Of a DNA stretch of 64,000 bases, positions 7,319 to 29,046 are shown piece by piece. This stretch comes from Lepidodermella squamata. Taxonomy: Eukaryota; Animalia; Gastrotricha. Numbering within the stretch: the stretch's first letter is position 1; every line of letters starts with the position of its first letter. The DNA lies in contig JBLDXI010000009.1 in the NCBI GenBank assembly GCA_047495785.1, positions 5,270,001 to 5,334,000 of the forward strand, in the 5' to 3' direction. The notes beneath the pieces are model-generated. The model searched no databases, had not been told where the DNA came from, and worked only from the letters and a program-made list of their open reading frames with translations. Made by a program: the position numbers and the translations under genes.

Positions 7319-8937
7319 GCAACCAGTGAACGCGTTACCTGTGATTTTTTTCTATCAATAATCATCTCGTTTTTTTTCGGAAGAAAACATTCATCTATAT
7401 ATCACTTATTGGTTTCGAGGGAAATTAAATGAACAAATACGTGCTCTTATTGTGGATTTTATGAGACACCCTGTGACCTAGGAAAATTGCGATTTTTCAC
7501 GGGAAAAAAGACATTTTTTGTTGGCTGAATGATGAATAATGATTTTTTCTGTTTACAAAAATTGATATCTGCGAAATATTATAATATCTTCTGTTATTGT
7601 CATTTTTTCGTATCGGTTTGTTATAACAATGAATAATCTTCTGTAGGTTATATTGTGTTGTAATTATTTATAAAATCATTTTATGCGAAAACTATTGAAT
7701 TCCGGCTTGTCGATGATCTGCTTCGTATATAATAATGTACCATAATAATACAAAGGATCAGCGGCTTGTGTGCAACGAATTTTTAAAAAGTGACTAGCAA
7801 CTTTGAAAGGAACAAAAGATGCTTGGATTGATATAATACTGAGGAGAATAAAAGAAACGAGCCTGAAGATATTATCCTAGAAATGTGTGTTTTTGCTAAT
7901 TTTTCAGGCGGTTTATTGTCCAAATACTAAGAATCACATGTCATCAGATAGTTTTTGTAATGAGGAACATGGGATTTTTTCATATTTTCAAATCAGGGTT
8001 GTGATCGAAGAGAAAAGTGCATTTTTTTGGCTGGGCCCATGTTCTCCTTTGGTAATTCACTTCATTCGGCGCACTTTACGAACAAAAGTAGGATAGATCT
8101 CTCTGCAGCGATTCTTTGCGATTGAACGGATTAGCAATTCTTGATTGGAAGACTATAAATATCTGCATGAGTATTCCCGGCTTAGGGGGTGTCTAATTTC
8201 GGGGATTGCAAATTGCACCAGTTTTTTTATAAGTTAGCTCCCCAACTACCTAATTACCAAATTTCTAATTTTTACCGTCAATAAAGGTTTTTTCCGGTAA
8301 TACTTAATGCCTCAAAACTAAGGCTAACAAGTAATTTTGTCTGCGTCGCTTATACGAATAAGACGAATCATCCTGACATTAATAAACCAAACGATTGCCT
8401 TACCGTTAACAGCGGCTCAGTTCATGAAAAGCGCCCTTCGTGTGCTTGCTTTGGGTCAATTCATACTGAGACATGTGAAGTATCCAACTTCATGTGCGGA
8501 GTCGGATCCTTCTTTCAGGTTCTTTCAGGCATATTCTCAGATCGATGGGTCACCACTCTGGTTTTTTAGGGGATTCTCGCTGGGTTACGGTACCCGCCTC
8601 GCCCCCTGTACACTGCATTGAAATTTGAAGTAGATTAGATTCGACTACCCTTACTTCGGTAGTACTTCTGGCATCGTAGAGCTCTGCACGGACATCGCAT
8701 AACGTACAAAAACATACGGCTGACATAAAAGTAGTGAAAGGGACAGACCACATGGGAAAAACTAAAACGCTTAATAATTGAGAAGTTGATGATATAATAT
8801 ATTATGATAATGACAGCTGAAAATACTCATTTTGATCCCTGGTGGACCAGCTCAAAACGAAGGAGCGAGCTCATTCAAATCTTCATCATTTCAAATTCAC
8901 TTGTTCTTTACACATCAATTAACAACTTTTATTCGAA

Positions 8938-13914: not shown

Positions 13915-14409
13915 GGGTGCCAACTTTCATACATAAATATGTATGAAATTTTTACCTTTCATACATATTTATGTATGACAAAATTAACTTTCATACATAT
14001 TTGTTTTCATTAAATTCGAGCTGAAAACATTAGGGAAATGCCAGATGACTAGATTTCGGTTTATGTGAAAGAAAAACGGGGTTCCGAAAGAGTAGTCAAT
14101 TTTTTCCGCATGAAAATGGTTATTGGGGAAGCGCAAGGGCCCAAAAATCGAACTTTGTCGAAACCCGAAACTCGAACTACCCTGACCCTAAACCTTAACC
14201 GTGAACCCTAACCAAACCCTAAACCTAACCCTAACCCTAACCCGAACCCTGGCACCTAACCCTAACCCCCAACCCCAATTCCTAATCACAGTTTGGCTAA
14301 AAAACACGATTTTATGAAAAAAAATATGTATGAAAGTTAATTTTGTCATACATAAATATGTATGAAAGGGAAAAATTTCATACATAAATATGTATGAAAG
14401 CGCACTTCG
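13915..14409 (-). mobile_element. MULE-type MITE with internal (CCCTAA)n, copy 2 (inverted relative to copy 1)
   Basis: Near-identical reverse complement of 12949-13441, with its own 9-bp TSD TATTTTATT. Confidence 0.8.
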
Positions 14410-14522
14410 TATTTTATTTTGCATAGCATCGACATTCTGATTGAGTGTAAATGATAATTACGATCAGTACGATCAGTGCTCAAAAAACCGAACTTCTTCT
14501 TAAATAAGCTATCGTGATAACC

Positions 14523-14748
14523 TATTGAGGGTGATACTTGAGCCTCTGCCCCGAAATGACATAAATTCATGATGAAGCCATGGACTTCTTGCCTTTTATG
14601 TGTTCCTGAATTTCTGAAGCGATTCAATGTGCTTAATGTGTGCATCGGCTTGGGCATCAAATATATTTTCCAGATATATTTTGATTGGCTGAAAGCAATT
14701 TTTCGCAAGTTTTACTTTGTAGTTACGGTCTTCAATTTTGCATATAAC
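14523..14748 (-). repeat. Inverted diverged copy of the region downstream of PAN gene C (continues at 24314-24350)
   Basis: Reverse complement of 25681-25951, interrupted at ATATAAC by the 14749-24313 insertion. Confidence 0.75.
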
Positions 14749-15631
14749 CAGGGTTTTTTTTAAGATTTCGTTTGGTGTTTACAAAATCTTGTTTGGTATT
14801 TACACATAAAAACCTTAAAAACTTTGCGAATTAGCGAATGTACTGAACTTCCCGGCGGCTGATTTGGCATGCCCCGTACCCCGTTTTTTTGACAGAAAAA
14901 TTCGCGGAAAATTCCATGTCAAATGTTTTTAACCTTCAATATGCTGCATTACTTAGCATGGTCGAAATAAGAATACATATAGCATATCTACCTCCGCGAG
15001 CGAAGCGAGCTTTAGCTAACGGTTTTTTTTCTATAATTTTAGTTGAAAATAGTCTAAAATTGATTCGACATTACGAGTGAATGATTTCTTGCTGCAACTC
15101 TCGCGGCCCTGCAATTTTGAAAAATTTCCTTTCCCCATACTAAATCACCCTTATCAAACCTTAGGCGCCACACCGATTCTCGTGGTGTTACGCAGTGGTG
15201 CGCAGCGAGCGCGCGCGGGCGCACACAGCGGCGCTGTGGTGTTCCTAGTACTCACGCATTTGGCTATCTGAGCCCGCTTCAGAGCCAGATTTGGCCCACT
15301 CGCTCTACATGTTTAAACCCGAGCGCGCGCGGGAGGTTCGTGATAATTACACACCATCAACTCAGCGATGATCATTTAAGCACGAGAAGATCGTTTCATT
15401 TATTATTATTAATTATTGCAAAACACTATCATATAATTGCAGCTTTTCCCGCAGTTGTGTATCAAATTGAAAATATATTAACATTTTTTGTGTTCTACGA
15501 AAACACCAGTGCGAAAGAAACAGTAAAAACCGTGGTAGATTCTTCTTTTTTTTACGAAAACATCATGGTTAGAGAAACGGTAAAAAAGCGATGATGAAAT
15601 ATAGACGGCGACATATCAAGTGCGAAATTTA

Positions 15632-17842
15632 TTATTTCTTCGATTTCTTCCTGGCCAGCAGTTTCCTCGCTTTAGCAACAGATTTCGCAGCAGCATGGAC
15701 CTGGGTGTCACCGCGTCGCGACTCAGGGTGCAGCAGCGCGTTATGGCGATCGGCCTCGGCCTGCGACTTGAATGACCATTGGCATCCTTGGTAAGCGCAA
15801 CGGCGGACGGCCTTATTTGGGTAGTACTTATCAGGTAATGCGAAAAGGAAACGCTGTTGCTCGAATTCGAGGTAGTGCCCAACCCGCGTTGTTGAGGGGA
15901 CTGGGTCTGGGATTCCGTATTTATTGACGTAGTTAAAAAAACCGCTCTCAGCCTTTGGTTGCTTGCTGCAGACGGAGCACTTTTCCCGCTTTTTCTCGTC
16001 GCATCGTTTGAAAAAAAGAAAACCGATGCGCCGATCAGTGTGTGCACACATTAGCCGCAGTTCGGCTTTTAACGATTCTTGCGAACTGCTGAATCGCCCA
16101 GAAAGAATGCACTTCCGCTCCTCTTCTGACACGGCCTTAAACACAGGTTGTCGCAGCTCGGTAATACAGCGCATCGGTTTTTGAGCGTAAAGCTGACCGT
16201 TAATCGCAGCCCGGACACGTTCAAGGGCATTTGTCGCACACTCAGCACTTTGAGAAGGACCAGGCGGAAATTCGCTGGGTGGCGCGGTCGATTGTCCCAC
16301 GCACACCGTATTCGCGCGACTCCAGACTCGCTCGATCGGATTAAACGCGCTCGCCCCTGCCGCGTTCTGCGTCACCACCAAGGTTTCCAACTTCTGATCT
16401 AAAAAGAAGCGCCAATAAGCCAGCGCGTTGACAGCGCCGTCCGCAGTGTAGTCAGTTCCGCCATCGACGATTAAAATGACGTTGACATATCCGGGATGCT
16501 CGGGCATGACGTGCCACTTCATGTCCGAGATGTGGTCGAATACGCTGTTTTTCGAGCCAAATAGCGGGCAGCGATTGACAATCGTGATAGACTGATCACA
16601 TTTCCGCTTGTCATTTCCACCAACAAATTCGAGATTTTCTTGGCACAGATAGCCGGCCGGTATTATCTTCAGATCCTTATTGGGGTCAGGAAAATCGTGG
16701 TCAGAAAAATTCGGGGCGCTGCCAAGCATGTAGTAAAACCTGAGCGATGAAAAATATTAAATTATATTTCCGAGAAATTAATTTCAGAAAAATGCGCGAA
16801 TAATAATGCTAAATTTTAAGAGTTTTAAAATATAATAAAAAATGTTTACCTATTGCGGCAACGTCGACTAACAATAGGTCCACCGATGTTGATTTTGTTT
16901 TTCGTGTCAGCAGAGATGATCAGGACATTCGACTTGTTCTCACTCGCGATCTTGAAGAGTAGCTTATTGCGCCCTAGGTGCCAATGAACAAGGTCATCAT
17001 TCGCGCGACGGATGGTGCACACCAGTCGTTGAACTTTGAGCGAAATTAGCCCTTTGTAATCTTTTGCAGCTCTTCTGCCTCGATGAGGTGCAACGAGAAG
17101 GCGGCGTACGCTACTGTTTGAGCATTTGTATCCTTCCTAAAAATAATTATATAATTATAATTATATTAAAGCTATTTAAGCTATTTATAATTTTTTAGGG
17201 TGAGTACAAATGTGTCCCTTGAAATTAAATTAAAACGCCCCATTTTTGTAGCCGAAAATAAACGAGTGCACACTGGTTGCGTAATACGCACCAACAATCA
17301 CACAACGCCACGCTATATAAGTAATAATAAACCGCGCGCAGAATATACGTAAAATATGCCGTCTAAAATAAATCACGCCGCCGTATTTTCAAGTACATAT
17401 TACTTGGAAATACAATGCAAATTTGATTATCTTTTATGATATAATTTAGTCTGAAACTTATAACGAAAGATCGCGCGCTTAAAAGTTGACGCGCAAAATA
17501 TTGGAAAGAGGATAAAAACATGACAATAACAACAATAACAATAACAATAACAATAACAATAACACTAACCTTGAGCAAATGATCCCGCATATCGATAGTT
17601 CGCGTGGATATTGTTAAGTCAGGGCCGTGGCGGCGTGCAGCTGCCTGAATTCGGTCCGCTAAAAATCGGTTCAAGTTGTCGACGAGGCCGGTTTGCTCTT
17701 CGATGCCGGTTCTTCCGACGCGCGTGCGTTTCTTTGGCGGCGTGCCGTCATTTTCTGACGACGGTTTTGCTCGTTTTCGCGTACGAATAGGCATATTCGC
17801 AAGGTATGCAGTGATTTCTTTCGTGGCACGTGAGTTAATCAT
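15632..17842 (-). CDS. Zator/TP36-like DDE transposase; complement(join(15632..16739,16850..17136,17570..17842)), 555 aa
   Basis: In-frame GT-AG splices. Motifs SADTKNKINIG, FSDHDF...KIIPAGY, LIVDGG, NAAGASAFNPIERVWS; C-terminal C2H2 finger CAYQGCQWSFKSQAEADRHNALLH. Confidence 0.8.
17523..17563. repeat. (AACAAT)n microsatellite in transposase intron 1
   Basis: Direct reading of the hexamer array. Confidence 0.9.
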
Positions 17843-17973
17843 TTTTCAAATTTTCAAATGAAAGAACATAATGATGTCTAAAGGGACCTCCATTCTCGCG
17901 GACCAATGGCTATTCGGGTATTCATCCGGTTGAATGTGATTGGTCTGTTACGCATAAGACCGGCTTTTCTTAT

Positions 17974-20900
17974 GGATCTGGCTATTCGGACACAGAATTG
18001 TGTGTCACGCAATTGCTATTCGGACACAGTGTGTTTGCGTGACTGGCTACTCGAACACAAGTGGTGTTAAGTGGTGTGTGCGCGCTTTTGGCTATTTGAA
18101 CACACGCTTTAAAACCGATTAAGACACCATGTAACAAAGCGGAAACGGTTTATTAACCCATTTCTCTAGCCATTACTCAAAATACAAAAAAGAAACAAAA
18201 AACAGTAAGTTATTTTTTACGGTTGAAGGGCATTTGCGGCTTCCCTTTCATGCGACCAGAGTCCTTCCCTTGTTTAAAACTAAGGCCTTCACCTGGTAAG
18301 TAGTCAGTCGTTGTCGGGCGGAGAGGAACTAGTTCGACTTTGATTGCTGCACTTTTTCCTTTCTTCGGCTTGGACGGAAACCGGCTGAGCTGGCGATCGT
18401 TGAAACACTGCAAGAGGTGGTGACGCATGGCGGCCGGGTCGAAGACCACTCGAGTCGGGTCGTTACCCGTCAGAATTTCGACACAATACGCAATGGCGTA
18501 AACGCCGCAATCAAAGCCATTCGACTGCTGAGGCACCGGCAAGACGTGGACGCTGATGGCGCCGTCAACAGCATGCGCGGCGTATCGTTGGGTGATTTGA
18601 GCTTTCAGCGATTCGGATAACGGCCCGATCAGGCTGTTCATCAGTTTGACACCAGCCGGTAGCTTGCCGACGGTTATCGTCGTAGTGGCGACCCAGTGGT
18701 CCGACCCGCAATGATGTAGTTGAACGGTTTCTGCAGTGGTAGGCGGAAACTGCAGTTGTGACAACAGCGGCGTAGCAGCATCAACGCCCTCGGCCCGCAT
18801 CATGCTGAACAACTTGTTCGCCGCGTGCATGTGCTCGTCGCCCAGGTAGGTGTCGGTGCGCAGCACGAGGTAATCCTGCTCGCGCAAGCCGAGCTCGTCG
18901 GTGATTGGTCCCGGAAGTGACGAATGAGCGTCAGCGGGCGCACACGGCGCATCAAAGGCGGCGGGTTCCACCGGTGACTGTGTCGGCGTGTTGTTGATGT
19001 TGTTGTCACCCGGTGCCTGCTGCTGCTCGCCCGGCTGCTGCTGCGCGCCCGGCTGCTGCTGCTGATCCTGACGAGGCGTCGCTTCTTCATCACCCACCGG
19101 AAGGTCCTAAGAAACCGGAAGGTTTAGTACACTCGCAAACAAAGCAATAAAACAAGATGTAATTACCTTCACAACGATTTCGAAATTTTTCTGGGCTCGA
19201 ATCAAGTCAGCCAACTTTTCCAATTGCGAATAGTATCTGTCGAAGACACGATTTGGGTGTTGCGAGGCGAGGTCAGCAATAACCAGGGTCAGCTGTGACA
19301 TTTTTCGATAACGACCGGCGTTATCAGCCGGTCTGCGCCCTGCTCTCGGCTTGAAAGTTGTTTCGGTGAATCTGTAGGCCGCGAATTCTGCGTCGAAATC
19401 GGCCTCAACCGGTCGAAAGTTGGCAGCGACTGGCTCGCCCCCGGTGACCGGGCGAATAAAATCATTGAAATACTTGCTGTGGAACAGCATCTTGTCAAAC
19501 AACGGCTCTTCGTGCTTCGATCGTAAGAACAAGATGTGATGACACGGCATGGCCATGCTCATGTAAAACGTGCAGGAGCACTTGCTCGGCGTGGTATTAT
19601 AGTCTGCCTGATCGCCATTTTCGAACTTTTCGCGAACACCAACGCCGTGAACCAAAGCCATTGAACGAGTAACGGATCGCTTCAACGAGCCGTGAAATTC
19701 CGCCAGGGCATAGCTAAAAAACAGCAATTTTACAAATTTGTCCACAAATTCTGAAAATAACTTACGATGAAATTTCGTAAGACGCTTTATCGAGCAATTG
19801 TTCAAACTGGTCACCTCGGCGAACAGCGCGCTTCACAACGGTTTTCTCGGCCCGGCGGCGCTCGATAAACGAAATCAGAAACGGAATGAAAACTGGCATC
19901 GGTGGCTTGGTTGAGAAGCCGGCGCACATTTCTTCCTTCAAGGAGCCGAAAAATCGTTTAACGCGTCCAGTCGTGTTAGTGAGCATGATCGGGTAACTGC
20001 GGCGGGCGAAAAGGGCCCACATTTCGACGCAATTCAGCCAGTTGCGCTCGAAATAATCGGCCAACGGCTGCTCAGCCGTGCGCGCGATTTTCACGGTGAC
20101 GTGCGGTTGAACCAGCGCACGCCAACTGCCGACGGCCGTTTCGAAAAACTCCTCGCGCTTAGAACCGACCATCGCCTTGAAACCGTCGAACACTTCGCAC
20201 TTGAATTGCTGCAGGTCGTTGACTTCATTGTTTCGAATCGTAGCGATGACGTTTCTCATATACTTCAAGGCGTGGAAAATGCACAGCAAAATGATACAGT
20301 CCGGAAATATTTCGCGGAGTATGTCAATTTGATCAAAGTCTTTGTCAACGATAAAAAACCACGGCCCAGCGCCATACAAATTCTTGAACTCTTGCAGCAT
20401 GGACTTGACATTTTGCGAGCGTTCGTCAGCTAGGAGAGACACGCCTGCGACTCGAGTGCCGCCAGTGAGAGGACAGACGTAAACAAACGTACACAGCTTG
20501 TATTTTTCAACATTTGTCTTGAAAGTCGTATCAAGTAAGATGGTGTTCGGCTTGAGCTTGTTCATGTCGTTAATCATCGACGGTGTCGCAATGAAGAGCA
20601 CGTCGACGTTACCGTTCGCGTCACGGGTGGTGCGCACGATGCCGTCGCCCTCCTGCACAGCTGCCAGTGTCTCGTCCAGAACACGTCGGCTTTCGTCAGG
20701 GCTGATGCGGTGTTTCTGTAACAATAACGGCGTAATTAGCTAAATTCGGACAGGCATTAGGCTTATTTACCTGGGCTAAATTGTGAATTTGCTTGGCGGT
20801 GATGAGCTTGTTGGTTTCATTGCTCACATGATGGGCGATCGTCGACGCTTTCGCATTGTTCTTCAAATGGGACAGGATCTCAGCCTTCTTCGCCTCGTCG

Positions 20901-21556
20901 AGTTTTCGGTTGAAACAGTAGGTGGCGTACCGCTCCTCCGAGATGTCGTGGCTATGGCAGCGCACGACTTGGTTGATTTTCATCTGCCCGTCCTTCGTCG
21001 CAGTGCCGGTGATTTTTGCCGGACAAGCCAGGTAAGCCAAATTTTGATTCGGACGCTCGCCATTGGTGATTTGCGCCTTACGTTTATAGCCATGAGTACA
21101 AATGAGACGCAGAGCAGACTTGTCAGTGCCACGGCTGATAAACGGCTCCAAAGTTTGGTCCCGAAACCGGGGTAGCCAATTGTCCACGATGTAATCTCGA
21201 GACGGAAAAACGTCTCCTGGTTTTATACTAAGCTCACCTGATTCAGTAGACATTTCAGTAAACATTGTTTGAAAAGTTAAAAACCGGACTACCCAAGGCG
21301 CCCCCTTTTTATTCTGCGTTGTTACTCATCACTTCCGCTTTAATTACCGCTCAATAATCACCCAATCATTGCCTTATTAGCGGAATTACAGCGCGGCGCG
21401 GTGTGTGTTCAAATAGCCGTTTCCGCGCACACACCGCTGTGTTCAAGTAGCCAATCACGCATACACAGTGTGTTCAAGTAGCCAAAAGCGCGCACACATT
21501 GTGTTCGAATAGCCATTGCGTGACACACATTTCGGTGTGTCCGAATAGCCTCGTCC
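17974..21556 (-). mobile_element. Mutator (MULE) transposon nested in the Zator
   Basis: Termini GGATCTGGCTATTCGGACAC and GTGTCCGAATAGCCTCGTCC; subterminal GGCTAYTYGAACAC repeats; perfect 9-bp TSD TTTTCTTAT at 17965-73 and 21557-65. Confidence 0.9.
18210..21265 (-). CDS. MULE transposase-SWIM-Ulp1(C48)-like protease fusion; complement(join(18210..19106,19167..19713,19766..20715,20771..21265)), ~962 aa
   Basis: Three 52-60 nt GT-AG introns join four ORFs in frame. FAR1/WRKY-like CPAK..HSH domain; LLDTTFKTN, IVDKD, LLCIFH; SWIM CSC..PCHH; protease HW and QQSNGFDCGVYA. Confidence 0.85.
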
Positions 21557-22161
21557 TTTTCTTATTAATTATTAATTACCATCTCAGTCAACCATCATTC
21601 ATGTTCGCCTACGAGGCGCCTCATCATCGGCCTGAAATCGCGACGAGACGTCATAAAGTCCGATTGAGTCGTATTTTCCCGCGCCCAAAGTTAATAATAT
21701 TGGTTGACCGTCATCGCGGCGGCGGCCGTGAAATGAAACCGCGCTGTGTAAACTTGCAGCCGGAGTAGTAGCCGGCTGCATCAAAGATTGCTGCAGCCGC
21801 AACTTGTCGCTGCTATTAAACGTTAAAGTATCACACTTTTGATACCCGCGAGCGAGCGAGCGCGCGCACGCCCGGCTCGGGCGCGCAAAACCGCCCGCGC
21901 TCATGAAGCGGATGCGATGAGATATTATGTAGTAGTATATGTGATATAACATAACTGCGATCAAGTAGGCGATAAAATTTAGCGTACAAAGAGTTGCGTT
22001 TAGCGCCAATTTTTCGCGTTAACCTGGGCATTTTTGTTGTTTATGCTATACAGTATATTATCTGCTGCATTGTTGTTTGCGTTTATTTATGATTGTAATT
22101 CAAAAATTCTCAATTTATTATTCACGCTATTAGCCTTCTTCAATATTTCATTTGATCTCTC

Positions 22162-23391
22162 ATGGCGTCTTCAACCGCTTACGTCCCGAAATTCGAACAC
22201 TTCAAGTCTGCAAAATACGTGAATTTCCATGGCGATACCGACCAGAAAACGCTTTACGCGAGCCTCGTTTATAAGGCTAGCCACGTACCTGCAAACTACA
22301 AGCAACAAGCGAAAGCCGGCAAGTCGAAAGGCTTGCGTGTTTGCTACTGGCCTCACACTAACGAGGCGTTCGTGGCCAGCAAATTCTACAGCACGGTGCC
22401 GAGTGACTGCCAGCTATCTTCACGAGATCAGCCTCAGCCCAGTCAATTCTGGCTCGATTTTCTTGAAGATAAGAAACAACGCCGCGTTCCGAAAAAAGCC
22501 GGGCATGTTGACGAGTCACAAGTCAGCGAAATCGGAGATGAATCACTGTCTTCATCACGAATGTCAAGTCCTACCTCACGAATGTTCGACGGTGAGAAAT
22601 CATCATCGCCTGCGCCGAGGCCAAAACCTAATCTCGAGCTCCCGACATTTTTCCAGCCTGAGTCTAAATTAGCACCAGCAGAATTGAAAATGATGAAGGC
22701 CGACTTGCTCTTCAGCATTCGATCTCAATCTCAATTTACCAACGACGTAGTTAAGAAAGCCGTTGATGCTGTTGATGTCAAAATTCGAGCTGAAATTGCT
22801 GTTTCCAACGAGGCCATAATGGCAAAAATCACCGAATTACATAACATGATGGCTCAGTTAATTAAGGCGGCGCCGCCTCGCGAGGCGATTGACGCGCAAT
22901 CCGTGCCTTTATCCGATGACAATCAAGCCGAAGACGAACGTACTCTTGGCCAAAGCGTCATCAAAATTGATAAGAAAGGCGAATTGAACGGTTTTTTCGA
23001 TGTTGGTGGTGATGAACGTTTCCCGATGCGAAAGCGAGATTATCACAATATCCTGGCGTCCTACTCAGAACAGGTCGACATCCTGGAAGCGCTGCTCAAG
23101 TACTTCATTGCCGAATCAGATCGATTCGATAGCGACGGCCGTCCATCGCTAACACACAATCACGACCTTTTTACCGCATGCACGTCCGAGGTGTATAACA
23201 ACAACAAGCGCTATGCGGCTTACGTCTACCGCACACACATGAAGATGTTGATCGACAAGCGCGTGGCTACTCGTCAAGTGCGTTCGACGGCTAAAAGTCG
23301 CACTCCCGCTGCACGTTCGACGAGTTCGCGTCCTCAAGCAGGTGCATCATCCGGGCTGAGCAGCTATGACGACCTCTCATCCAGCAACTGA
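22162..23391 (+). CDS. Zator passenger/accessory protein, 409 aa, unknown function (possible PWWP-like + coiled coil + BEN-like)
   Basis: Long uninterrupted ORF wholly inside the Zator TIRs, divergent from the transposase. Heptad region aa ~195-236; helical C-terminal domain EALLKYF...LFTACTSEV...MLIDKRV. Confidence 0.75.
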   Translation: MASSTAYVPKFEHFKSAKYVNFHGDTDQKTLYASLVYKASHVPANYKQQAKAGKSKGLRVCYWPHTNEAFVASKFYSTVPSDCQLSSRDQPQPSQFWLDFLEDKKQRRVPKKAGHVDESQVSEIGDESLSSSRMSSPTSRMFDGEKSSSPAPRPKPNLELPTFFQPESKLAPAELKMMKADLLFSIRSQSQFTNDVVKKAVDAVDVKIRAEIAVSNEAIMAKITELHNMMAQLIKAAPPREAIDAQSVPLSDDNQAEDERTLGQSVIKIDKKGELNGFFDVGGDERFPMRKRDYHNILASYSEQVDILEALLKYFIAESDRFDSDGRPSLTHNHDLFTACTSEVYNNNKRYAAYVYRTHMKMLIDKRVATRQVRSTAKSRTPAARSTSSRPQAGASSGLSSYDDLSSSN

Positions 23392-24354
23392 GTTTGGCTA
23401 TCGCTATACCTTTTGTCATACGTACCTACTTATTGTACCTACTGGCTCTCGCGCGCTTTGATTTTATCTAATTTAAATATCACTTCCAATGCGCAGATGT
23501 TATTAATTTGAATAGTTTTTTTTATCTGGCAAAATATGGAAAACATCCGTGTTGTAAAGATATCGTGAATACTGTTTTGCTTTTTTGTTGTTTCCTCTTC
23601 GTTTTGTGTTTTTTGTTATTGATGATTGGGTGAAGCGACGGGTAAATACTTTGTTGCTATAGAAGGTTGTTGCTTTAGAAAAAGTTCATGGTTGATGATT
23701 TGCTTAACATTTTAATCTGGTTATGTCTTTTCAATTGAAAATGCCGGGCGAAATTTTGTGAAAATAAAAAGCGGTAATGCGATTTGTTGTACTCGTACAG
23801 TAAGGCGGATAAATTCACAATAACTTGCATAACACCACACGCACGAATTTCGCGCGAAAGCGCGCGCATCCGCGTTTGAAAACTCGCCAAGCGCAACCTC
23901 GCTCCGGAGAAGGCTCAGATAGCCAAATGCGTGAGTACTAGGAACACCACAGCGCCGCTGTGTGCGCCCGCGCGCGCTCGCTGCGCACCACTGCGTAACA
24001 CCACGAGAATCGGTGTGGCGCCTTATTCCTAAATGGACTTCATCGACTTCACCTTCAAGAATGACTATCACAGGAGCAGTATGTTATCATTTCATGATGT
24101 TTAATTCGAGAAATTACCCAACGGCGAGCGAAGCGAGCTTTAGCTGACGATTTTTTCCAAATTTCAGCTCTGAAAATGGTCTAACAAAGCTTAAAAATTA
24201 CCCGTAACTATCCCGTCAACTCCTCATTTAGGGGCGATCTAAGATTTTGGTGTTTACACTTCACCGTTTTGGTGTTTACTTTGTAAACCTGTAAACCCCT
24301 TAAAAAAACACTGATATAACTCCCCTTCTCTTCATGTTGGCCGAAGCGTGTTAT

Positions 24355-25627: not shown

Positions 25628-26312
25628 TGAAAGTCAAGGTATCAGTTATCAGAAGAGGAGGACAATATGTTGAATAGATCGCGCTACGGCCAACATGAAG
25701 AGAAGGGGAGTTATATTCAAAGTTATATTGAAGACCGTAACTACAAAATAAAACTGCATTGCGAAAAAGTGCTCTCACCCGATCAAAATATATACGGAAT
25801 TTGATGAACCAAGCCGATGCGCACATTTCAGGCACATTGGATCGCTTCAGAATTTCAGGAACGCGTTTGTGTGAGACAATGGGTATAAAAGGCAAGAAGT
25901 CCCTGACTTCATAATGACTTTATGGCAGAGGCTGAAGTATCACCCTCAATAATCCATTCATCATTCATCACGATATCACGCTGGCGCATGCCCATGGCGA
26001 AGTTGTATTCAAAATCGCCTGTTCCATTCGCTGAAATGCCAAGCTGATTCAAGGAACTAGCCGTGCCGTGGGCCTAATTCGGCATAGTATATTTCTCGTG
26101 AGGTAACTGCTATCCTAAAAATTTCAATTGGATTTATTCCCAAACAAATTCAAAAATTCCTATTAGCTTGAAACTTGATATTTTGCTCGATTTTAAAGTT
26201 CAAAATAACAAATCAAGCACAGCGTGAGGTTAGTTGAACGTCTCACCTGCGTCCGGAAGATAGTTAAAATCACGAGGATGCTGATGCAGCTGGCTCCAGG
26301 GCTTGGAGATTC

Positions 26313-27440
26313 TATTTATTTATTTATTTAAGAGCATTTATCTCACAGTTGAGAGCTCGGTTATAAAAAATTGTCAATGAGAAAAAAGGTAGCAACAAGT
26401 CATGATTATTCGGTCCTGTTCAGAATTTAAGAGTCAAGTAGATGTACAATTAACAATTAATTAACAATTATTAATCGACAGCAGCTTGCTATATACACGA
26501 TCATCCGTTATTGAAATCAGGTGTTCATAAACAATTTGACGACACGCGTTCGCGCTGTGGCACGCATTAAATCCACAAGTACAAGCCGGAGGTAATTCAG
26601 TATAAGCAAGAATATCAATAGCACGATTGTAAGGACAATGTATGTACAAAGGAAGTTTGTTAAAAAAAAGTAGGACCTCGATAAGCGAGGCTAATCTGAC
26701 CCGTTTTCAGCCGCATGTTGGGAATTTTGAATGTCAGTCGGGCACCACGTGTTTGTCGAATGGCCTGATTTGTTGAAATAAATAGATTGTACGGACTTGG
26801 GGGCTTGGTCGACCAAACAGCGATACATTAAGGTGGCTAAATGAACGCCTCGTTTGCCCTTTAGGTCTAGCCATCCCAATTCTTTTCGTAAGGCCTTAGC
26901 GTCGGCATGATCTCGTTCGTGGCGCGGAAGAACCCGCACTTCGATGATTTTTTGCCCTGACTGTACCCCGCGAGTACAGCATAACGCACAGTATTGCATA
27001 TAGTATCCAAGGCTGTACTCCGGCGGTACAGTCAGGGCAAAAAATCATCGAAGTGCGGGTTCTTCCACGCCACGAACGATCTGGGGCGTTCATGATTATA
27101 CGGACAGCCCTATCTTGAAGGCTTTGCATTCTTTGCAAAGACGTATCACATGCCTCACCGACAACTGTGTCGCAATAATGCAGATGCGAAAAGATTAGCC
27201 CATTAGCCATGGCTTTGAGACAATTTCGGTTTAAGCCATTTTGCGCTGCTAATTTCAGTGCGAAAAGCCCTTTTCTCGCCTTAGCACATGCCTTTTCGAC
27301 ATGGTCATTGAAAATTAGTTTGTTATCTAAAATAACGCCCAGCAATGTCATCGAGTTTGTCTGATCGATTTTCTTCCCATCGATTTTGATTTCAAGTTTT
27401 GGTTCTGATGAACTGTAAGAGATAATCATCAATTGGGATT
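26313..27440 (-). mobile_element. 5'-truncated CR1/L2-like LINE (RT C-terminus, 3' UTR, (TAAA)n tail)
   Basis: LLGVILDNKLIFNDHV..LIFSHLHYC..LQSLQDRAVRII..LRKELGWLDL; tail TATTTATTTATTTATTT at ~26313-26329. Confidence 0.8.
26914..27078. mobile_element. 165-bp palindromic MITE inserted in the LINE
   Basis: ~67-bp inverted arms; ATCT duplicated on both sides; removing it restores the LINE frame NAPD-HADA. Confidence 0.85.
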
Positions 27441-27606
27441 TCTCAATTTCTCACACTGCACCAAAGCAGCGATGTCTATAAGATCAGGTCAGATTATCAC
27501 GTAAGTAGAACTAAACCTTAGCGTCGAAGACAGCAAACAAGCCGGGGCGCTAAAAATGTACATCTCTGATACAGCTCTAATGTTTTTGTTTAAGAATTAA
27601 TAATTC

Positions 27607-29046
27607 AAGAAGGAACTCCACCTAGTCTTCATCGATCTCGAAAAAGCCTATGATCTGGTGGACAGGGAAAAAGTATGGGCCGCCCTCCAAAATATGGGTG
27701 TAGAACCCAGCTTAATTGAAGCTATTCAAAGTCTATATAAAGTAAATAAAGTTGCTGTTAGAGTCGATTCTGAGCTCTCAGATTTCTTCTATGTTACCAG
27801 GGGACTAAGACAGGGTTGCCCGTTGTCTCCTTTGCTATTCATAGCGACCTTCAACAAAATTTGCGAAAAAATATCTGCTGAAAAATTAGGCTTTCCTATT
27901 AGCGAGACCGCAAACAGCGAGACCGCTATGAGCGAGACTGATTTCCTAAATTTACTAGCGTTTGCTGACGACGGAACACTTTTAGGCATGAACCACGACG
28001 AAATTTCACGACTACTTCACATTTTCGATTTGGCTTGCACCGAATTGGGTCTGAAAATTAACGCGGCAAAAACTCAATATATGATTATTTCTAGGGACGA
28101 GTCAGCCACTCAAAATTACGAATTGGAATTGAACGGGAAAAAACTTGAAAAAGTGACCAAATTTAAATATTTAGGGAGCATTATTACCAGTGACGGCAAA
28201 ATCGATGAGGAACTAAACTACAGAATTTCTAAGGCAGGCAGTGTTTTCGGCGCCATGAATAAATTCATGTGCAACAAAAGTCAGGTTTCCATAGCTACAA
28301 AACTTAAGGTACTGACATGTGTTATAATACCTACCATCATTTACGCCTGCGAATCGTGGAACATATCGATAGCCCAAGAAAATAGACTAAACACTATAGA
28401 ATATCGTTGGCTTCGATCTATAGTAGGTGTCCACCTAATGGACTATATTCCAAATATAGACATTCGACTTGCGTTATGCGGAGGTCTCATTGAAGTGAGC
28501 CGCATTGTTGAAAAACAAAGGCTAAGATATCTAGGGCACATAATTAGGTCACGTGACTATGACGTAGAAGGACTAATACACAAAATATATATTTGGACGC
28601 CTCCGCTTGGGTGGTTTGCACCCAGAGGTAGACCTCGAACCAGATGGATCAACGGAGTGCATAGAAGCCTAATTAAAGTAGGTCTTACTAAGGAAATTCG
28701 CCGGAAAAAGAAAACCAATAAGAACAATAAGGTCAAAGATAAGAAAAATAAAGCCACTAAGAAACGAGAAAATAGAAAAAATCCCGGCGAAAAGGATTTT
28801 GAGATCAAAATTATTCCCGATGTCCAACTAGCGGAATCGGTTTCTTTTGAAAAAGATGAATGGCGCATGGTTGTTAACTCGATTGAAATTACGAATTCTA
28901 TACAAAAAGCAGAATCCTCGACTGTGGGGGTGGGTGAGGATCATTCTTCGCCTGCCTTCGCCCTCTTCAAAACCGGAAACGGTACACGACGCTCAGTCCC
29001 GAAGAGGATAAATAAAAACATTATTATTTATATTATAATTCAATGA
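27607..29046 (+). mobile_element. 5'-truncated RTE-like LINE reverse transcriptase ORF
   Basis: FIDLEKAYD, GLRQGCPLSPLLF, AFADD, FKYLGS, RLRYLGH and RGRPRTRW motifs. Confidence 0.9.

Follow-up and report, generated by a model that had tools for sequence, protein, structure and literature searches.

Zator is a superfamily of DNA transposons that was reportedly introduced by Bao, Jurka and Kapitonov in 2009. Few superfamilies of DNA transposons have been studied less, and its elements are regarded as having a single gene. In amphioxus, Zator-1 generates a TTA/TAA 3-bp duplication and ends in terminal inverted repeats (TIRs) of 33 nt (PMC12905397), and the Zator transposase has no Pfam family (PMC5751038). 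Two genes and a 3-bp TWA duplication are found in PIF/Harbinger, the closest functional analogue of the element described here, in which a Myb/SANT-like DNA-binding partner reportedly attaches to the ends and recruits the transposase. The BEN domain, which enters this analysis as a candidate fold, is defined as globular, with five alpha-helices and a loop in the middle, and DUF4806 is reported to be structurally equivalent to Insv-BEN (PMC10789644).

Here we describe a Zator-type element in the window, i.e., the whole 64,000-nucleotide stretch of Lepidodermella squamata DNA that was analysed. Like Zator, it has a 3-bp TTA/TAA duplication and TIRs, and it encodes a DDE transposase with an IS630/Tc1-like “NPIE” glutamate motif that belongs to no Pfam family. 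Unlike the published elements, which are described with a transposase alone, the lineage to which it belongs has a conserved second gene, ORF2, and its TIRs are 128-145 nt long rather than the 33 nt of amphioxus Zator-1. No report of a second gene in Zator elements was found in the literature searched.

Architecture of the Zator-type element and its transposase

The element extends from 15164 to 24022 of the window (8,859 bp), and its TIR arms, each of 128 nt, are 95% complementary. ORF2 lies inside it and is divergent from the transposase, the two genes being placed on opposite strands and pointing away from each other. The ends and the transposase exons are as follows, with comparisons made to a diverged element on another contig (C16).

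15164..15291, + strand: left TIR, with a TTA target-site duplication at 15161-15163
23895..24022, - strand: right TIR, with a TTA target-site duplication at 24023-24025
17570..17842, - strand: first transposase exon, 91 codons, ending in AAG at a GTTAGT donor
16846..17000 (approximate), - strand: middle exon of the transposase, where the candidate first D lies (ISADTKNK), 23 aa of which are 96% identical to the C16 copy
15632..about 16750 (upper limit approximate), - strand: last and largest transposase exon, with the remaining triad residues, D and E (VDGGTDY ... NPIERVW), DD43E

In the last exon, VDGGTDY and NPIERVW are spaced by 43 residues. Genome matches of this exon comprise the C16 copy, which is 58% identical, and about 24 weaker ones. 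The C-terminal 110 residues of the transposase (window 15632-16729, minus strand) are rich in Cys and His (C..C..C..C ... C..GC.W.F....A..H....H), a pattern conserved in the C16 copy that possibly forms a zinc-binding module. No match to the window transposase was found among Pfam, NCBIfam and PDB profiles; a word-index protein search with the exon gave no relatives, and a scan of metagenome contigs with a transposase profile gave nothing. The two features by which Zator is recognised, a 3-bp TAA/TTA duplication and TIRs, are both present, and it is by these and by the Tc1/IS630-like motif, not by a Zator profile, that the element is tentatively classed as Zator-type.

The flanks of the element contain several other repeats. 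Inverted-repeat segments at 14523-14736 and 25727-25951, 85-97% complementary and about 11 kb apart, bracket the whole Zator, and immediately beyond its two ends, at 14996-15028 and 24124-24156, are the copies of a 33-nt direct repeat (94%). The window Zator probably sits within another repeat or element. A degenerate telomere-like CCCTAA/CCTAAC tract at 14177-14267 is followed by three 32-nt tandem units at 14322-14417, and the stretch from 26691 to 29046 holds reverse-transcriptase ORFs of a non-LTR retrotransposon, related fragments of which lie just right of the Zator.

The spacer between the two Zator genes houses a nested MULE, which is not part of the element to which ORF2 belongs.

17974..21555, - strand: nested MULE, 3,582 bp, with FAR1-like, MULE/ZSWIM RNaseH-like, SWIM and Ulp1 (peptidase C48) ORFs

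The MULE is flanked by a 10-bp duplication, CTTTTCTTAT, at 17964-17973 and 21556-21565. It carries 31-nt subterminal repeats, and its ends are common to dozens of shorter relatives. A full copy at C13:3490060-3493642 is 99-100% identical to the nested one, indicating that the insertion is young. The MULE is upstream of both genes, at a distance of 131 nt from the transposase ATG and about 600 nt from ORF2, and may therefore disturb a shared promoter; it may also have silenced the window copy of ORF2.

ORF2 is conserved in two diverged elements

According to the ORF listing, all of the strings quoted in the first-pass annotation are present in a single ATG-to-stop frame.

22162..23391 (stop codon included), + strand: ORF2, accessory gene of 409 aa, intronless here; identified by the ORF listing, one paralog and codon-position conservation

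The genome, a 121-Mb assembly of 151 contigs in which the window is located on contig C9, was searched in six frames. Only one other ORF2 is present, on contig C16, with an identity of about 32-35%. It matches ORF2 over residues 7-137 (32% identity, E 2e-9) and 171-384 (34%, E 2e-21). The C16 element is 5,050 bp long (L029:2415-7464) and has 145-nt TIRs that are 99% complementary and a TTA duplication; its two genes adopt the same divergent layout as in the window, without the MULE. Whereas the window copy is intronless, the C16 ORF2 is interrupted by a 249-nt GT..AG phase-0 intron (L029:5992-6240), and the exons of the C16 ORF2 and of both transposases were kept separate, being searched and aligned one at a time. 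The start (MA...) is kept in both ORF2 copies, and both reading frames are open, that of C16 given its intron. The C16 Zator is itself inserted in a non-LTR element, with reverse-transcriptase ORFs (L029 1546-2217 / 7386-7922) of the same family as those at 26691-29046 of the window.

At the DNA level, similarity between the window and C16 elements is confined to the transposase and is absent from ORF2. At codon positions 1/2/3, identity between the two elements is 0.50/0.71/0.38 in the C-terminal block of ORF2 and 0.46/0.52/0.33 in its N-terminal block, compared with 0.67/0.75/0.35 in the transposase. Given saturation at third positions and conservation at the first and second, ORF2 is under purifying selection and is not decaying; the evidence is qualitative, as two sequences with saturated synonymous sites give no dN/dS number. 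Neutral decay among copies, which would have counted against the first-pass proposal, is contradicted by the conserved first and second codon positions.

These data bear out the proposal of the first-pass annotation that ORF2 is a transposon accessory gene: it lies inside the TIRs, shows the same divergent layout in the diverged C16 element, and is conserved by codon position. ORF2 is a real and intact gene, inherited together with the transposase. An open frame that arose by chance in the transposon would be in keeping with the lack of database relatives, but it would have to stay open for 409 codons, match its paralog colinearly and in frame (E 2e-21 and 2e-9), concentrate its conservation at codon positions 1 and 2, and keep its MA... 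start in a paralog with a clean phase-0 intron. The paralog match and the codon-position conservation effectively refute this explanation, to which we assign a negligible probability.

ORF2 diverges much faster than the transposase, with 34% versus 58% identity between the window and C16. This difference, together with the lack of a recognisable domain or relatives, would agree with ORF2 being cargo without a role in transposition, a gene that was captured or arose de novo and benefits the host or the element in another way, for instance by countering host defence. Several observations argue otherwise. The position and orientation of ORF2 are kept in both diverged elements, and a distinct Zator family has an equivalent gene, the first exon of which is weakly similar. 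No free-standing host copy is present either: domain profiles detect no other ORF2 copies in the 121-Mb genome even at E<=10, which leaves no host gene as a recent source of ORF2. We regard cargo as a clearly unlikely role for ORF2.

Predicted layout of the ORF2 protein

Alignment of the two copies, combined with structure prediction, divides ORF2 into the following blocks.

22162..22467, + strand: N-terminal block, aa 1-102, from the alignment with the C16 paralog; predicted strands and one helix
22468..22509, + strand: basic patch, aa 103-116 (KKQRRVPKK), candidate NLS with a net charge of +5; RKKNERNK is its counterpart in the paralog
22510..22665, + strand: Ser/Pro/Thr-rich linker, aa 117-168, 42% S+P+T, predicted to be disordered
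22666..22875, + strand: long amphipathic helix region, aa 169-238, with predicted helices 172-188 and 194-236; possible coiled coil
22990..23325, + strand: C-terminal helical block, aa 277-388, BEN/DUF4806-like candidate, from the C16 alignment (41% identity) and predicted secondary structure

In the N-terminal block, which is 31% identical between the two copies, six aromatic residues (F14, Y32, Y37, Y62, F70 and W97) are invariant. AlphaFold predicts strands at residues 14-23, 29-37, 59-63 and 68-72 and a helix at 44-51, with pLDDT values of 50-66. This strand-strand-helix-strand-strand order is suggestive of a PB1/ubiquitin-like fold, but a genome scan for PB1 misses ORF2. The basic patch that follows may serve as a nuclear localisation signal; both this patch and the basic C-terminal helix are kept in the C16 paralog. 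The intron of the paralog falls in the stretch that corresponds to the Ser/Pro/Thr-rich linker.

In the best heptad register of the long helix, 50% of the a/d positions are strong hydrophobics, compared with a background of 36%. As this heptad signal is moderate, the coiled coil is only plausible. An acidic linker (aa 239-276) leads to the C-terminal block, in which DGxPSLTHNxDL and YRT..K....KR.A.R..RS..KSR are invariant in both copies. AlphaFold predicts for this block, at low confidence, a hairpin and then four helices, with a loop over “DGRPSLTHN”; the predicted order is two helices, a short turn, the DGxPSLTHNxDL loop and two further helices, of which the last is long and basic. The last helix and the tail carry a net charge of +8, with a pI of 11.4. 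The blocks described in the first-pass annotation are thus recovered with regard to the beta-rich N-terminal block, the Ser-rich linker and the C-terminal helices, while its coiled coil is plausible rather than shown.

A 65-nt GT..AG interval at 22592-22656 inside ORF2 was considered as an intron and rejected, given that 65 nt does not make up whole codons and that both of its flanks are conserved in one frame. Its ends are good intron-like ones (GTGAGA...TTTCCAG), and it could represent an alternative short isoform or a coincidence; as 65 nt is not a multiple of three, its removal by splicing would truncate ORF2.

Domain and fold searches

Neither whole ORF2 nor the isolated blocks of both paralogs match any Pfam or NCBIfam family. 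With the BEN model (PF10523), whole ORF2 and the C-terminal block of either paralog give no match even at E<=10, and a six-frame genome scan gives no match on ORF2. The DUF4806 model (PF16064) does not match ORF2 in Pfam, and a genome scan with the same model returned nothing, in a run that did not recover the controls either. PDB profile searches with the alignments of the N-terminal and C-terminal blocks were also blank.

Searches for relatives outside the genome gave the same picture. A word-index protein search with whole ORF2 and with residues 262-385 (E<=10) returned nothing, nor did scans of viral, bacterial/archaeal and metagenome contigs with a profile of the C-terminal block, and an exact-sequence look-up of ORF2 returned no record. 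A HMMER scan of 1.84 billion representative proteins with a two-paralog profile found no true relative; its sole match, a 9-fold tandem-repeat protein, was rejected as an artefact.

AlphaFold models, for which the input consisted of two sequences only, reach a pLDDT of 44 for full-length ORF2 and 52 for the C-terminal block alone. Foldseek comparisons against PDB (both models) and BFVD (the C-block model), and wide VIA-align searches with both models, yield generic long-helix matches only, and neither of these poor models shows a fold match to BEN 4IX7-type chains. As the models are poor (pLDDT 44-52), the blank fold searches are uninformative and amount to no refutation. In the ESM Atlas, the nearest clusters to whole ORF2 are DUF4806 (0.86, 170-171 shared features), and BEN appears at rank 22; a score under 0.9 is a lead only, and the recognition value for this query is low. 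The layout predicted for the C-terminal block by the low-confidence model is compatible with the definition of BEN (PMC10789644). The BEN/DUF4806-like C-terminus suggested at first pass thus retains a weak Atlas lead, a compatible layout and a basic tail, set against blank Pfam, PDB and fold searches, and we put the probability of a BEN-like fold near one half.

The first-pass annotation had gone further, proposing that ORF2 may join a PWWP/Tudor histone-mark reader to a BEN DNA binder and could thereby steer integration to marked chromatin or counter silencing. Readers of this type have a five-stranded SH3-like barrel and a conserved aromatic cage. The strand-rich N-terminal block with its six invariant aromatics would suit such a reader; the weak DUF4806/BEN lead for whole ORF2 and the succession of a helix and a C-terminal helical domain, which is seen in many BEN proteins (PMC10789644), would suit the BEN part. 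However, with the first 114 residues of either paralog as query, PWWP, Tudor, chromo and MBT models in Pfam give no match at E<=10, and no such match is found among PDB sequences. The tryptophan of “YWPH”, W63, is Asn in the C16 paralog, and in the low-confidence model a helix intervenes between strands 2 and 3 and no closed barrel is seen. In the Atlas, residues 1-112 have only unnamed clusters as neighbours. Moreover, seven insertion sites (two of autonomous elements, three of MITEs and two nested) show only the TTA/TAA target. A PWWP/Tudor reading of the N-terminal block is only disfavoured by these results, since the six aromatics are invariant and the model is poor; the combined proposal of a chromatin reader that directs integration or opposes silencing, roles that are conjectural, appears very unlikely to us. 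The domain claims that made ORF2 attractive are unproven, and the gene itself is real and constrained.

Mobilised copies and a second Zator family

Three MITEs of about 846 bp carry the TIRs of the window Zator (C2:1600780-1601625, C42:774600-775447 and C32:987804-988650), and two solo TIRs of the same type are present on C33 and C28. The MITE TIRs are 88-96% identical to those of the window element, and the similarity includes about 40 bp of left subterminal DNA; their interiors are unrelated to the window Zator, and their flanks are TTA or TAA. In detail, both autonomous elements and one MITE have TTA on their flanks, and the two further MITEs have TAA at the right end. The window Zator family has been mobile in this genome, and as the non-autonomous copies of about 846 bp bear its TIRs, it has been mobilised in trans.

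A second Zator family, with a transposase about 36% identical to that of the window, is present on C36, C10 and C4. It also contains an accessory gene, which lies inside the element, adjoins the transposase, and is 96-100% identical among the three copies.

L030 (C36:865500-875499) 849-2896, - strand: second-family accessory gene, divergent and multi-exon; also in L031 (C10) and L035 (C4)

No Pfam domain is detected in this gene. Like ORF2, it is placed divergently beside the transposase, and its exon 1 aligns with ORF2 residues 49-96 at 25% identity (pairwise BLASTP E 9e-5, shuffle p about 0.001). Aligned with the same stretch of exon 1, the N-terminal block of the C16 paralog gives a shuffle p of about 0.07, and hhalign of ORF2 with exon 1 gives an E of 0.012 and a probability of 3.5%, below significance. 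Unlike ORF2 in the window, the second-family gene has several exons, and its remaining exons show no detectable similarity to ORF2. The alignments suggest, without establishing it, that an N-terminal module is common to Zator accessory genes.

A possible partner of the transposase

The reading that we favour, with about an even chance of being correct, is that ORF2, as the second gene in a lineage of Zator-type cut-and-paste transposons, acts in the nucleus as an element-specific transposition cofactor or regulator. Under such a mechanism, ORF2 would be transcribed away from the transposase out of the shared spacer; selection has maintained it throughout the divergence of the two surviving elements. 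Its long central helix would pair two chains. The C-terminal block, with its basic last helix and tail, would bind DNA, most plausibly the 128-145-nt terminal repeats, through a fold that is perhaps BEN/DUF4806-like, and the N-terminal block would contact the transposase or another protein. The faster divergence of ORF2 would suit a partner that tracks diverging subterminal DNA, and it would also fit a role outside the core reaction.

The same features may be read in the opposite sense, with ORF2 acting as a self-regulator that represses the element by occupying its ends or the divergent promoter, or by titrating the transposase, so that copy number stays low. BEN proteins are commonly repressors. 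The copy number is indeed very low, with one autonomous copy per lineage and three MITEs; ORF2 is divergent on a shared promoter region, and a dimer-type helix followed by a basic, DNA-binding-like C-terminus would be in keeping with a repressor. However, these are the same data as those for a helper and do not discriminate between the two, and neither the spacer nor the TIRs yielded repeats that might be binding sites. We judge self-repression to be rather unlikely.

A second gene that is selected in two diverged elements and has a counterpart in a third family is suggestive of a requirement for a partner protein in part of the superfamily, a requirement that would change the annotation and classification of such elements and their reconstitution as tools. 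In a more general and tentative form, which we hold to be possible though doubtful, some Zators would be obligate two-component systems, in which a hitherto unrecognised, fast-evolving partner family recognises the long TIRs and recruits or restrains the transposase by means of a common N-terminal module, a dimerising helix and a BEN/DUF4806-like end that binds DNA.

Comparison with known systems

With PIF/Harbinger, the resemblance is limited to the two-gene organisation and the 3-bp duplication. In contrast to that superfamily, the window transposase has no DDE_Tnp_4 or Plant_tran match and its motif is Tc1/IS630-like, and ORF2 matches none of the Myb/SANT models in Pfam. Membership in PIF/Harbinger is excluded for both window genes, and the comparison would hold as an analogy only. 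With BEN (PF10523) and DUF4806 (PF16064) proteins, ORF2 appears to have in common a long helix that precedes a helical domain at the C-terminus, about 100 aa in size, in which a loop lies at the centre and the final helix is basic; it differs from them in having no HMM, PDB-profile or fold match, the last of these judged on a poor model. If the C-terminus of ORF2 is BEN-like, BEN-type domains would be linked to a further class of mobile elements. An obligate two-component Zator, if real, would be mechanistically parallel to PIF/Harbinger and would add a transposon origin for BEN-type DNA binders.
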